Shown here: one piece after another, positions 26,412-50,595 of the stretch | Position numbering within the stretch: position 1 is the stretch's first letter | Layout of the letters: every line of letters begins with the position of its first letter | From: Paraphysomonas bandaiensis | Taxonomy: Eukaryota > Protista > Chrysophyceae | Direction: 5' to 3' | DNA length: 64,000 nt | Assembly: GCA_965644295.1 (NCBI GenBank) | Contig: CBFFRP010000429.1 | Location: 62,001-126,000, forward strand | Made by a program: the position numbers and the translations under genes | The notes under the pieces: generated by a model | The model's input: only the letters and a program-made list of their open reading frames with translations | Database searches by the model: none | Told to the model about the DNA's origin: nothing

Positions 26412-26507
26412 GCTGCAGCTAGAGCGTTAATTATACTCCTCGTTGAAATGTCATGATCTGTCCACCCATAAACAACACCACAACCCCATACAATATACGC
26501 ATGCATG

Positions 26508-26679
26508 GATGTATGTATGTATGTATGTATGTATGTATGTATGTATGTATGTATGTATGTATGTATGTATGTATGTATGTATGTATGTATGTATGTATGT
26601 ATGTATGTATGTATGTATGTGTGTATGTATGTATGTATGTATGTATGTATGTCTGTATGTATGTATGTATGTATGTATG

Positions 26680-26710
<31 letters not shown>

Positions 26711-26856
26711 TGTAGGTATGTATGTATGTATGTATGTATGTATGTATGTATGTATGTATGTATGTATGTATGTATGTATGTATGTATGTATGTATGTATG
26801 TCTGTATGTATGTCTGTATGTATGTATGTATGTATGTATGTATGTATGTATGTATG

Positions 26857-26887
<31 letters not shown>

Positions 26888-26934
26888 CGTATGTATGTAT
26901 GTATGTATGTATGTATGTATGTATGATATGTATG
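26508..26934. repeat. (TATG)n microsatellite, ~430 bp
   Basis: Direct reading; source of the spurious MYVC/HTYI ORFs. Confidence 0.98.
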
Positions 26935-41957: not shown

Positions 41958-42794
41958 TTAAGATTATATATGTGGTAACGTTTTATACATATGCATAAAG
42001 CTATACCCTCACAATAGTGGTAGTCGCATTTGATGATCTCGGTGATGGACTAAGACTTTTGATTAGGCATTTTATTTCATCCCCTGCTTCAGTGTATGGA
42101 GATTTGATTATGTTAATCTTCTGTAGCTAGACTAGCTAATAAAAATTGAAGTCAATCGAAGGTAGTTATGTGCTTATTGCCAGAGATAGAATTAAGACTA
42201 AGATTAAAAAGCTTATAAAAAGAATAAAACCTTTTATTGAAGAGCAGTGCACAATTGCTTAAAGTACCAAAACTTTTCATATACATAATACAAGTTTATC
42301 ATGTACAGTGTACAGCAGGACTAAGGAATATATTGTAATTGTAATACCATTGTTAAAAGCGTGTCAACAAAAAAATTGATAAGAGTTTTTAGTAAACCAA
42401 TGAAACAATACTATTTCAACAGTAATCTCAGCTTCTAGACTTGATATTTCAGCTTCTATGGTTACCATTACCATTTATTTCGAATATATTTACCACTGGT
42501 TATTTTCGTATATAATAGTATATAGTATCTTTCTAGAAGTTTCGTGTTCATTTTTAGCACACTACATGACTACTTGTGGAAAGAGTGTATATATTAATAA
42601 TTAACATATCTTAGTGACTTACAAGTGATACCCTTTCCAGCAATAAAAACACCCATTTCGTGTGGATTATACATGCAACTGAACACACGACTGTATGTTA
42701 CAGCTCAAAAATACCACGAACAGCCTGAGACGGGTATATATTAATTTGTATCATTATATATATATGATGTAAACCGGAAACATCAGATAACCCA

Positions 42795-44775
42795 TCATAT
42801 ATTCGCAGCTTTGACAATTAGCTCTACGTTAGTGGATCCCCTGACGAAAATGATTAAATCAGCATTAAGAAAACAAAGCTTTCAACATACTTCATCGTCG
42901 CTTCAAGACTAGCAACTTCTTCAAGATATTCATAGGCCCTGCATGTAATAAATGAATTCACGTACTAAGAAATCGAGAACACAAAGAAAAAAATAGCATA
43001 CACAAAACCCAGGAAGAAGAAACCCAAGCTTACCTTATTACTCTAGAAAATGTTTTGGTCCATAATTTATACTCCTCCTCATCATTGGCCATAAATTCCG
43101 CTGCCTCCAGAGGGGCCAATTCCGAATATATCTGTACACAATGTCACAACAACCTATAAATAATTGAACCTCACCTTCGGTAAAAGGGCAAATTTAAATT
43201 TATTCACTGCCAAACGTAAGTCGTACTCTGATGCCAGCAATACCGGCCATGCAAATTCTCCCTGATTCATCGTAATCTTTCTCAATTTCTTGGTAAGTGA
43301 TGTAACTCCTTTCGGAAATTTTCTACGGACATAACAAAATTAGACTGTCACATAGAGGTCAGTATAATCTATTGTACACATCAATTTCATATAAAGGTAT
43401 ATCCTGTATATTGCAATTGAGTGGTGTGTATCTTACGAGTAGTCTGTCTCCAATTTGTATTGCCACAACTTGAAGGGCTTCTTGTTTATGGGATCATTAT
43501 TTTCAACAAAATCCTGCACACAACGCAATGACGTGAACGAAGGCAAGACTCACTATATCAGTCCATATAGTTCAGTATACTGATCACTGTATAAGCGTAT
43601 ATATAGCACACACATAGCACGATACAGTTTCGACACCATGCTTATATCATGTGGTCCGCAGGAGTACCTTTTCGCTTTTGTAAAGATCAAGCATTCCCCG
43701 TTCAAGTACCGCGTATCGACAGAGAAGTTTGCCACCATCAGACAGTGGTTGTCTCCACCAGAGCATTCCCCGAGCCCTAGTGCGACTAGCCTGAATATAA
43801 TAGATCAGTTGTTTGTACTGCAGCAAAGAGTTGAAACTACTATATATGACAACATTACAGACAGAATAATAGCAAGAAAAATGCGCATTATAACAAATTA
43901 TATTTATACTTCATAGGAAACACTGTGTACACATACTTCTTGTTGGGAAACTGTTTCCGCTGAGAGCACAGTCTCACAATAGTCTTCTTCTCTTTTAACC
44001 TCTGATTCACCATTGGATCCTTTGGAGTGATCGATCTCACCCTGATTAGGGGCTGAGTTCACTCTTTGATAGGAGCGATTACTAACGGAGGTGTCAAGGT
44101 TACGACCGCTGAGTGTGACTGATAAAAGAGTTAGATATAACATTTTTCATCTCTCATTTATTTTATACCTGTAACCTTCTCCATGGCGGTTTTGCTTCCA
44201 GGATGAAAGGCATCATAGCACCTTAGCCCCTCCCTCACAGTGAATGCGTAACCAACGACATACACAATAGTGGTAGATAAGGCCACCGCTGGGGGAATCT
44301 TCGCCCAGAAATTAAATATAGTTGCCAGAAATATACAAGTTAGTGAGGCAGCACCAATAAAGAGAACTAAGCGACGCTGGTCTCTGATCTTGTTAGCCAC
44401 AAAAAGTACGGTATCGAACTCAGCACCCTTCAAAGCAACAGCGGGTCCATGCATCGTAACAAGCGTACTCTGCGCAGTGGCAAATATCGACAAACACAGT
44501 GTAGCATGTATAAAACAATCATACAGGAACTCTAGACCGATCCACGTGTATCCTGTAGTGGGCATCGTGATCTCTCCAATCCCTATACACACATAAGGAA
44601 CACTCCTGAGCCAATCACATACATACACACCTGCAAATGAAAAAGCTCCAATGAGAGCTGCTTGTGTTCCTATGGACTGAAGGTTCCCCACATACAGGTT
44701 GATTAGACGGGTCTGCAGCTCAAGCATGCCCTTAGTAAGGGTTGCCTTGAGGTAGTTCTTATCTCCATGAATCAT
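42795..44775 (-). CDS. Orai-like 4-TM protein with C-terminal PH domain
   Basis: After removing intron 44630-44583, TM1 reads NLQSIGTQAALIGAFSFAGIGEITM, followed by three more TMs. Later exons give RARGMLWWRQ...CRYAVLERGMLDLYKSEK|DF...KFALLPK|...EFMANDEEEYKLWTKTFSRVI. Confidence 0.75.
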
Positions 44776-45301
44776 TGTGTAGTACAGTTAATTAAGTAGC
44801 ATATAGATATACTTCATACTGTGCTGCAGGTGTTATGTGTCTCGTCATGTGTTATATATGTATGTATATGTGTGCCTTAAGTGAGTGGGGTACATGTATA
44901 TATGTATGTATATACAGTACAGAGAATACGATATGGATAACATACACACAGAGGCAGCAGTTCTATGACACTAAAGTGTACATAGAGACATATATACAGG
45001 AGATTTTTGTAGATAGTGTAGCAGATTTTCGTACATAAATATATGGTATATGGGCATGAAAACTCCGAAATATAGAATCAGTTTTCAAGAAAACTGTGCT
45101 TAGAGAGCCTCACGACAGCAGCTCTTAACTAGCTCAGAGTATGGGCGGGCATTCAAGTTTGCTTAACCAGCAGAATGAGCCCATCTATTCTCGCACAAGC
45201 ATACTGCTATTCCATGTAGTAATCTGTGTCATTGTGACGGTACTTAGAAACCAATGTATGTATAAATATATATGCGGCTATAGTTATTTACAGTGAGCGC
45301 A

Positions 45302-46012
45302 ATGAATGTTGACAAAGAAGCTACTGATAATAATACCGAGACAAAGTCAAAGCGCTCTGAGCTTCCTTGGTGGATGCCTCCCCACTACAGAGCTCTTATG
45401 AAGCCCAACAAACAATATAGTCAGCCTAATGGACCCACTACGACAGCTTCCAGTGATGACCGAGTAACAGAAAAACGGAACAGATATAACAACCCGTCTA
45501 TTATATTTTACGCATTTACTGCATTTTTTCTTGTGGATGTTGCTATCTGGTTAGGCATAAAGAGGTTTTATAAGCGTCCATCAAAGGCATGGCAAGACAT
45601 GGGTCAGCAAGGAAATCGACATCAAGGTGACAGCAGTCAGCATCGACAGAATGCTGAATCATTTCACAAAAACTGGCAATCCGCCTACGCAAATTATGAA
45701 AGTTCACAGTCCTATCAACGTAGCTCGAGTTATCAACGTAATGAATCGACTTATCGTAGTTCGTACAGTGGTATACCATCTCATATAGAACGTCATATGA
45801 GGGCTTTGGATATACAGGGAAGTAGTTTACCCACCATAAATGAGGTCAAAAAAGCGTTTCGTCAGATATCTATGCATAATCACCCAGATAGATTAGACTC
45901 CAGTATATCTCCTTCAGAACGACAGAGGCGTATCCGAAAATTTATTAATGCCAACACATCCTACAAAGCACTTTTAACGAATTTGCGTATAGCAAACAAC
46001 GATATCAGCTAA
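45302..46012 (+). CDS. Single-TM protein with C-terminal DnaJ domain
   Basis: TM IIFYAFTAFFLVDVAIWLGI; J-domain EVKKAFRQISMHNHPDR...FINANTSYKAL. Confidence 0.85.
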   Translation: MNVDKEATDNNTETKSKRSELPWWMPPHYRALMKPNKQYSQPNGPTTTASSDDRVTEKRNRYNNPSIIFYAFTAFFLVDVAIWLGIKRFYKRPSKAWQDMGQQGNRHQGDSSQHRQNAESFHKNWQSAYANYESSQSYQRSSSYQRNESTYRSSYSGIPSHIERHMRALDIQGSSLPTINEVKKAFRQISMHNHPDRLDSSISPSERQRRIRKFINANTSYKALLTNLRIANNDIS

Positions 46013-49962: not shown

Positions 49963-50445
49963 TGTATGTATGTATGTCTGTATGTCTGTATGTCTGTATG
50001 TATGTATGTATGTATGTATGTATGTATGTATGTATGTATGTATGTATGTATGTATGTATGTATGTATGTATGTATGTATGTATGTATGTATGTATGTATG
50101 TATGTATGTAGGTATGTATGTATGTATGTATGTATGTATGTATGTATGTATGTAGGTATGTATGTAGGTATGTATGTATGTATGTATGTATGTATGTATG
50201 TATGTATGTATGTATGTATGTATGTATGTATGTATGTATGTATGTATGTATGTATGTATGTATGTATGTAGGTATGTATGTATGTATGTATGTATGTACG
50301 TATGTATGTACAGTGTATGTATGTATGTATGTATGTATGTATGTATGTATGTATGTAGGTATGTATGTAGGTATGTATGTATGTATGTATGTATGTATGT
50401 ATGTATGTATGTATGTATGTATGTATGTATGTATGTATGTATGTA
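49963..50445. repeat. (TATG)n microsatellite, ~480 bp
   Basis: Direct reading. Confidence 0.98.
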
Positions 50446-50595
50446 TATACAGTGTGTATTATTTGTACAGCTTGTCTGCCAATGAGATGTCTGGATGTCT
50501 TTATTGTCAGTGGTTAGCTATGGCTTCGTGCGTGTTCTATTAAACGCTCCAGTGCTGCAGAGTAAACTGTGCTGCTAAGTGTACATCAAAGAGCA

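Follow-up and report, generated by a model that had tools for sequence, protein, structure and literature searches.

A gene of nine exons lies on the minus strand of a 64,000-nucleotide (nt) stretch of DNA from the chrysophyte Paraphysomonas bandaiensis (assembly GCA_965644295.1, contig CBFFRP010000429.1, positions 62,001 to 126,000), which is referred to here as the window. The locus is one expressed gene, whose product combines a four-helix membrane domain homologous to the Orai subunits of animal Ca2+ channels with a linker of ~60 residues and a C-terminal pleckstrin homology (PH) fold that contains a helical insert. By reading of the sequence, the start ATG is placed at 44775 and the TGA stop at 42797-42795 of the minus strand, and RNA contigs extend the mRNA from at least 44868 to beyond 42700. 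The features of the gene are listed in Table 1.

A single spliced gene joins the membrane domain to the PH fold

In an initial annotation, made from the sequence alone, it had been proposed that the first transmembrane helix (TM1) becomes recognizable only once a short in-frame intron is spliced out, and that exons largely missed by the open reading frame (ORF) track encode a PH fold further downstream. The unspliced frame from the ATG gives an ORF of 205 amino acids (aa). Because intron 1 reads through as part of this ORF, the TM1 motif is hidden in it. Removal of the 48 nt makes TM1 read ...AALIGAFSFAGIGEIT, and the junction is found spliced in RNA contigs. Exons 4 to 7 encode GMLWW...RYAVLERGMLDLYKSEK...EEEYKLWTKTF, in agreement with the initial annotation.

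Splicing was checked by aligning contigs of four RNA or probable-RNA runs to window positions 42700-44900. Each of the eight introns (8/8) was skipped exactly at the predicted junctions, the gaps being bounded by CT..AC when read on the plus strand, i.e., GT..AG on the gene strand. Two individual RNA contigs, of 1530 and 1470 nt, each extend across the complete set of nine exons, and one of 1306 nt, from a poly(A) marine metatranscriptome, reaches from exon 2 to exon 9. The exons of the membrane part and of the PH domain therefore reside on one mRNA, as the initial annotation had assumed, and a reading as two separate genes is ruled out. Its spliced form occurs in poly(A) metatranscriptomes from the sea, so that this gene is in use there among bacterivorous flagellates, which are an abundant group.

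The protein sequence databases hold the same product. P0166 (426 aa), from transcriptome MMETSP1103 (taxon id 36769, Paraphysomonas), clusters with P0001, the protein predicted from the transcript contig L012 of the Joint Genome Institute (JGI), and the in-frame translation of every exon is an exact, collinear substring of P0166. L012 itself (1055 nt, 99.5% identical) joins exons 1-4 at the predicted sites and thereby confirms the first three junctions. Its positions 835-1055 correspond to window 43790-43570, where the contig enters intron 4 unspliced and ends, and for this reason P0001 stops after 294 aa. This read-through reflects either intron retention or pre-mRNA in the JGI assembly.

An artefact of the gene model, in which the membrane exons and the PH exons belonged to two adjacent genes or the 48-nt stretch were coding, could draw on two observations: the short intron is in frame and stop-free, so that an unspliced ORF exists, and intron 4 is retained in one JGI contig. 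Against this, the exons are joined and all eight introns are gone in the 1530-, 1470- and 1306-nt RNA contigs, which come from different studies, and intron-free contigs of orthologs encode the same fusion (P0008, 416 aa; P0172, 422 aa). We thus regard such an artefact as extremely improbable.

Table 1 Features of the Orai-PH gene in the window. TM, transmembrane helix.
Feature	Position in window	Strand	Content
Whole coding region	42795..44775	(-)	9 exons, 1281 coding nt, 426 codons plus stop; product P0166
Exon 1	44631..44775	(-)	N-terminal cytosolic helix into TM1; residues 1-48 and first base of codon 49
Intron 1	44583..44630	(-)	48 nt, in frame, GT..AG, stop-free, three codons before the filter Glu; skipped in RNA contigs of X1, X2, X3 and in transcript contig L012
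Exon 2	44169..44582	(-)	End of TM1, outer loop, TM2, TM3, TM4, post-TM4 EG.R.Y..F motif; residues 49-187
Glu52 codon	44572..44574	(-)	Aligned with Drosophila Orai E178 (human Orai1 E106)
Exon 3	43937..44118	(-)	Polar linker of ~60 aa from membrane part to PH domain; no family match in Pfam scan
Exon 4	43668..43790	(-)	PH strands beta1-beta3 (GMLWWRQ...RYAVLERGMLDLYKSEK)
Exon 5	43437..43513	(-)	PH strands beta4-beta5
Exon 6	43175..43322	(-)	PH helical insert and strand beta6
Exon 7	43034..43131	(-)	PH strand beta7 and C-terminal helix with conserved Trp (YKLWTKTF)
Exon 8	42891..42938	(-)	C-terminal helix, continued
Exon 9	42795..42840	(-)	Last 14 residues and TGA stop

Kinship of the membrane domain with Orai

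To relate the membrane domain to known families, a family profile was built only from the window gene, its orthologs and six paralogs of the same genome. Searched against the PDB, this profile had Drosophila Orai chains as all of its six best matches (E 0.07-0.45). The alignment places the family Glu on the filter Glu of Orai and brings TM3-TM4 into line as well. When the profile was run against 1.84 billion cluster representatives, 1939 proteins were found at E<=0.001 and 910 at E<=1e-10. Among the best 150 of these 1939 representatives, 57 match the Pfam family Orai-1 (PF07856) at E<=0.01, with a best value of 1.3e-9. Two of the proteins, P0041 (29.2 bits) and P0116 (29.9 bits), exceed the PF07856 gathering cut-off of 25 bits over nearly the whole profile when scanned singly. 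They match the family profile at 2.6e-41 and 4.3e-26, respectively, and the window protein in BLASTP at 8e-13 and 2e-14, and these alignments again pair the Glu residues. Together, the significant matches form a chain that leads from the window protein through P0041 and P0116 to PF07856 and establishes homology with Orai. The data thus support placing the four-helix part in the Orai superfamily, as a divergent member whose selectivity-filter position is occupied by Glu, and uphold both the Orai-like assignment and the E106 register of the initial annotation. In hhalign, the family matched the TM1-TM2 exon of the genome's canonical Orai weakly (49% probability, E 1.7e-4, 38 columns), again with the Glu in register, a result that is not decisive on its own.

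The predicted fold points in the same direction. An AlphaFold model of residues 1-193 (predicted local distance difference test, pLDDT, 92.9) contains helices at 2-52, 63-100, 104-143 and 146-174. With Foldseek, the check that had been suggested for the TM region, the nine best PDB matches of the model were all Orai (probability 0.99-1.00, TM-score 0.46-0.64 by target). An exhaustive VIA-align search ranked the Orai chain 4hkr_A fourth (Z 10.6, 137 residues, span 18-179), among generic helical bundles, and this chain was the sole top match to span all four helices. By shape, the ESM Atlas returned a haptophyte cluster in which 34% of the members carry PF07856 (TM-score 0.86, root-mean-square deviation 1.9, 178 residues) and a diatom (Bacillariophyta) cluster (TM-score 0.85). 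By language-model features, Orai-1 clusters made up 22 of the 30 named neighbours in the Atlas. The PGG-domain family of four-helix proteins, named as an alternative in the initial annotation, does have a similar arrangement in the membrane and matched by shape in the Atlas, but at a TM-score of 0.63 it falls clearly behind the Orai clusters (0.86). As no Pfam scan gave a PGG signal either, this family was rejected.

Self-association was assessed with a four-copy model of the membrane domain, which scored 0.56 versus 0.00 for the best control. The three runs share at least 93% of their contacts, and the partner pLDDT is at least 71. For orientation, the mark for self-association in this test was reached by 21/30 proteins solved as one-chain pairs and by 0/23 proteins solved as single chains. 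The contacts with the least error join TM1 to TM1 at 37-37, 41-41 and 44-44, which is what an axis lined by TM1 predicts.

Pore positions were counted back from Glu52, using the Drosophila register of the profile alignment (Table 2). In the window protein, the hydrophobic gate is retained, as is the outer Glu. The basic inner ring (R91/K87/R83 in human Orai1) is replaced by the uncharged residues Thr37, Gln33 and Val29, and gating and permeation may therefore differ from those of Orai. The Glu is nearly invariant among the close kin and paralogs of the window gene, and together with Phe45, Leu41 and the TM1 core GTQAAL.AGF it is strongly conserved in the clade that holds this gene.

Table 2 Predicted pore positions of TM1 relative to Glu52.
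Position	Window protein	Family-wide	Drosophila Orai
i-4	Ala48		V174
i-7	Phe45	Phe in 88/118	F171
i-11	Leu41	Leu/Val in 100/118	L167
i-15	Thr37	Thr in 96/118	K163
i-19	Gln33	Asn/Ser/Thr/Gln	K159
i-23	Val29	Thr/Val/His	R155

In comparison with the Orai subunits of animal calcium release-activated calcium (CRAC) channels (human Orai1; Drosophila Orai, PDB 4HKR, 6BBF and 7KR5), which are its best PDB match both by sequence profile and by fold, the window protein shares the four-helix subunit with a long TM1, the in-register Glu at the outer end of TM1, the Phe at i-7 and the Leu at i-11 of the hydrophobic gate, and the conserved Trp in TM3. It differs from them in its low identity (~15%) and a score under the Pfam cut-off, in the exchange of the Drosophila K163/K159/R155 ring for Thr/Gln/Val, and in the linker and PH domain that take the place of the C-terminal STIM-binding (M4) extension. 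In addition, no STIM activating region was detected in the genome, as described below.

The PH tail and the spread of the fusion

Exons 4-7 align in collinear order with the C-terminal domain in 11 family representatives of full length. The Pfam PH family (PF00169), with a gathering cut-off of 25.1 bits, matches P0166:245-426 with 18.7 bits (E 0.0027) over profile positions 17-105 of 105, and 10/10 family members tested gave 14-19 bits, all below the cut-off. With the ortholog P0008:225-416 standing in for the window tail, a model was obtained (pLDDT 78) that shows seven strands and a capping helix, with a low-confidence helical insert of ~45 residues between strands 5 and 6. Against the PDB, this model found 84 matches at E<=0.001, and of those listed, 50/50 either are PH domains or contain one, with Slm1, the split PH of PLCgamma2, PLEKHA7, TAPP1 and Akt at the top. 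The TM-score to isolated PH-domain chains is 0.7-0.8 by target. A Trp in the C-terminal helix is present in 12/12 aligned sequences. These structural matches, together with the Pfam PH hit, support the PH fold that the initial annotation had read from the exon translations.

PH domains that are split or bear inserts (PLCgamma2 split PH, 2W2W; Slm1 PH, 4A5K) resemble the tail in the seven-strand sandwich, the capping helix with its conserved Trp and the presence of an insert. Unlike in these proteins, the insert is here a low-confidence helical segment, and the domain is attached to a channel subunit. As both halves of the protein score under their Pfam cut-offs, routine annotation labels neither of them.

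The fusion is present in 11 full-length cluster representatives. Within the genome, PH-like exons are found just downstream of Orai-like exons on five contigs (C457, C559, C296, C249 and the contig of the window, C429). In a quick tree, 19/22 PH-bearing rows fall into one clade of 56 rows (Shimodaira-Hasegawa-like support 100), the short rows of which are mostly truncated predictions. The Atlas neighbours of a full-length ortholog are haptophyte clusters of 341-426 aa, with a Pfam PH domain in 59-74% of their members. Most homologs in the databases are unnamed.

Some of the relatives call for separate mention. The paralog ORFs L006 (C559, 1333-1905, minus strand) and L009 (C296, 1459-1854, plus strand) begin two and six residues before the Glu, respectively (CTGIGE and CGVFAGE). 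These frame starts suggest that both genes have an intron before the Glu at the same place as the 48-nt intron of the window gene. P0009 (NCBI CAE7552949.1), which is deposited under Symbiodinium microadriaticum as an unnamed product, is almost identical to the paralog L007 (C457:162965-166339) and may stem from a chrysophyte contaminant in a dinoflagellate assembly. In the database protein P0128 (828 aa), an Orai-like N-terminal membrane domain is combined with a pleckstrin-like set of domains, namely DEP (E 2.8e-7) and PH (E 1.7e-15, a strong match). Zinc-ribbon, B-box or RING/IBR tails occur in other family members, and the cytosolic tail of this Orai branch thus looks modular.

Canonical PF07856 genes are also present in the genome, on C66, C374 and C348, so that both Orai types coexist in it. 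Their exons (L001-L004) lie at C66:45760-46673, C374:19092-19298 and C348:136901-137104 and, like the window gene, encode a Glu where TM1 ends (SSLCEIQ). The proteins encoded by the C66 and C374 copies hardly differ, and the matched stretch of C374 contains one TGA. A genome search for the STIM activating region SOAR (PF16533), conducted in six frames and exon by exon and hence of limited sensitivity, gave no match (best E 0.62), which is in line with the STIM-independent channel that the initial annotation had put forward.

Possible working of the channel and competing explanations

Taking all data together, we consider it probable that the gene encodes a pore subunit, homologous to Orai, that assembles into a ring and carries its own PH module, which may open or position the predicted channel. 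Judging from Orai structures and the topology, the subunits would form a ring in which the long TM1 helix lines the central pore. Glu52 would provide the outer cation-selecting ring, and Phe45 and Leu41 the hydrophobic gate. Both termini would be cytosolic, and the PH domain would therefore sit under the membrane, in the place that the STIM-binding M4 extension has in animal Orai. More tentatively, the PH module might open or position the channel by binding a membrane lipid or a protein partner, an idea prompted by a genome without detectable STIM and a pore without the basic inner ring of Orai.

Several results weigh against this reading. Pfam scans returned no PF07856 match at E<=10 for the window ORF, its single exons or P0001, and none at E<=1 for P0166. 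The unspliced ORF and the single exons gave noise only (Rv2743c, E 0.2), and the spliced TM part, searched against the PDB with phmmer, matched nothing but TOM22, by chance. Orthologs and paralogs match PF07856 weakly and consistently over TM1-TM2, at 13-19 bits and hence below the cut-off (E-values of close homologs: P0007 0.0016, P0009 0.0021, P0008 0.004), and the score of the PH tail likewise stays below that of its family. The VIA-align Z of 10.6 is within the chance range of helical bundles. Self-association was modelled with four copies rather than six, by a method that may remember Orai structures. Within the pore, the basic ring is lost, and the Glu occupies its column in only 67/116 rows of the wider family, the other ~40% holding Gln, Thr, Gly, Ser, Asp or Asn. 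Finally, the canonical basic pocket of PH strands beta1-beta2 is not conserved among the orthologs.

The last point bears on the idea that the tail is a canonical high-affinity phosphoinositide sensor, through which lipid binding gates the pore directly or tethers the channel at a contact site. The PH fold is clear, and its best structural matches include the lipid-binding PH domains of Slm1, TAPP1, PLEKHA7 and Akt. We looked for the basic motif K-Xn-(K/R)-X-R in beta1-beta2, using Akt1 for comparison. Strand beta1 of the window protein ends in a basic residue (WWR), where an Arg is conserved in 11/12 aligned sequences, and an Arg also lies where beta2 starts (CRY). However, its (K/R)-x-R pair is incomplete, and the beta2 basic position is occupied by Gln, Glu or Val in 5/12 sequences, including that of the nearest ortholog, P0008. 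Moreover, one of the top matches, the split PH of PLCgamma2, has a protein ligand, Rac2. Tight phosphoinositide binding is a property of only a minority of PH domains. As the canonical lipid-binding residues are only partly present, phosphoinositide binding by the tail appears possible on sequence grounds but is not indicated, and a canonical sensor of this kind strikes us as unlikely. The initial annotation had gone further and proposed a candidate lipid-gated Ca2+ channel. Of its reading, the Orai-like subunit, the Glu register, the PH fold, the single gene and the lack of detectable STIM are supported. A lipid-gated Ca2+ channel may still describe the protein, with mixed evidence for the lipid part.

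The pore residues raise a different doubt, namely that the membrane domain descends from Orai and is no longer Ca2+-selective, so that it would conduct other ions or serve as the membrane anchor of a PH-based signalling scaffold. The loss of the basic ring and the replacement of the Glu in part of the wider family are compatible with this scenario, and the variable tails of the family (DEP plus PH; zinc ribbons, B-box, RING) suggest a modular signalling role. Yet in the clade of the window gene, the Glu, Phe45, Leu41 and the GTQAAL.AGF core are conserved, as expected of a pore under selection, and the TM1-TM1 contacts of the oligomer model fall at exactly these positions. Loss of Ca2+ selectivity therefore appears rather improbable to us.

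Returning to the favoured reading of a pore subunit with its own PH module, a clade of Orai-type subunits with a built-in cytosolic PH domain yields a concrete and testable hypothesis, i.e., that of a regulator acting in cis. It is conceivable, if well short of probable, that the Orai-type channels of chrysophytes, haptophytes and diatoms are self-contained, in that the covalently attached PH domain replaces STIM and, on the cytosolic side, links opening or placement of the channel to a lipid signal of the membrane or to a small GTPase. If true, CRAC-type channels would have a previously unknown gating mode, and the activator that has long been sought for Orai outside animals would be found. 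The loss of the basic inner ring, in turn, offers a natural comparison for the part that this ring plays in the gating of animal Orai.

In the literature, STIM is not reported outside animals and choanoflagellates. Orai is found without STIM in many algae and early-diverging plants, and how it is activated there is stated to be an open question. Diatoms possess a divergent, monophyletic class of Orai that is distinct from the plant and green-algal type and has a Glu equivalent to Drosophila E178 (Murphy, Kleiner, Helliwell & Wheeler 2024, Plants 13:1207, PMC11085791). In the same study, STIM was undetected, another protein was proposed to fill its role, and both Orai types were found to coexist in one genome in some cases. 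The window gene resembles this class as a stramenopile Orai clade with a retained filter Glu, absent STIM and coexisting Orai types. The likeness is drawn from the published description and, indirectly, from the match of the membrane model to the Bacillariophyta cluster (shape TM-score 0.85). In contrast to the present work, the paper deals with diatoms rather than chrysophytes, and a PH domain or domain architecture is not mentioned in it. In searches of full texts for an Orai-PH fusion in algae, stramenopiles or chrysophytes, no paper came up that describes one. Divergent algal Orai was thus already known, and the fusion to a PH domain is apparently new as far as we searched.

Outside the gene, the window contains a divergently oriented ORF of 239 aa at 45293-46012 (plus strand), whose C-terminal stretch resembles a J domain and includes an HPD motif (...ISMHNHPDRL...). 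The ORF also has a single hydrophobic segment. Judged by these features, it may encode a membrane DnaJ-type protein. Long arrays with a 4-nt periodicity are located at ~26500-26930 and 49980-50450, where they are visible as a ladder-like series of short BLAST hits whose counterpart is the 5'-untranslated region of L012 (its first 22 nt).

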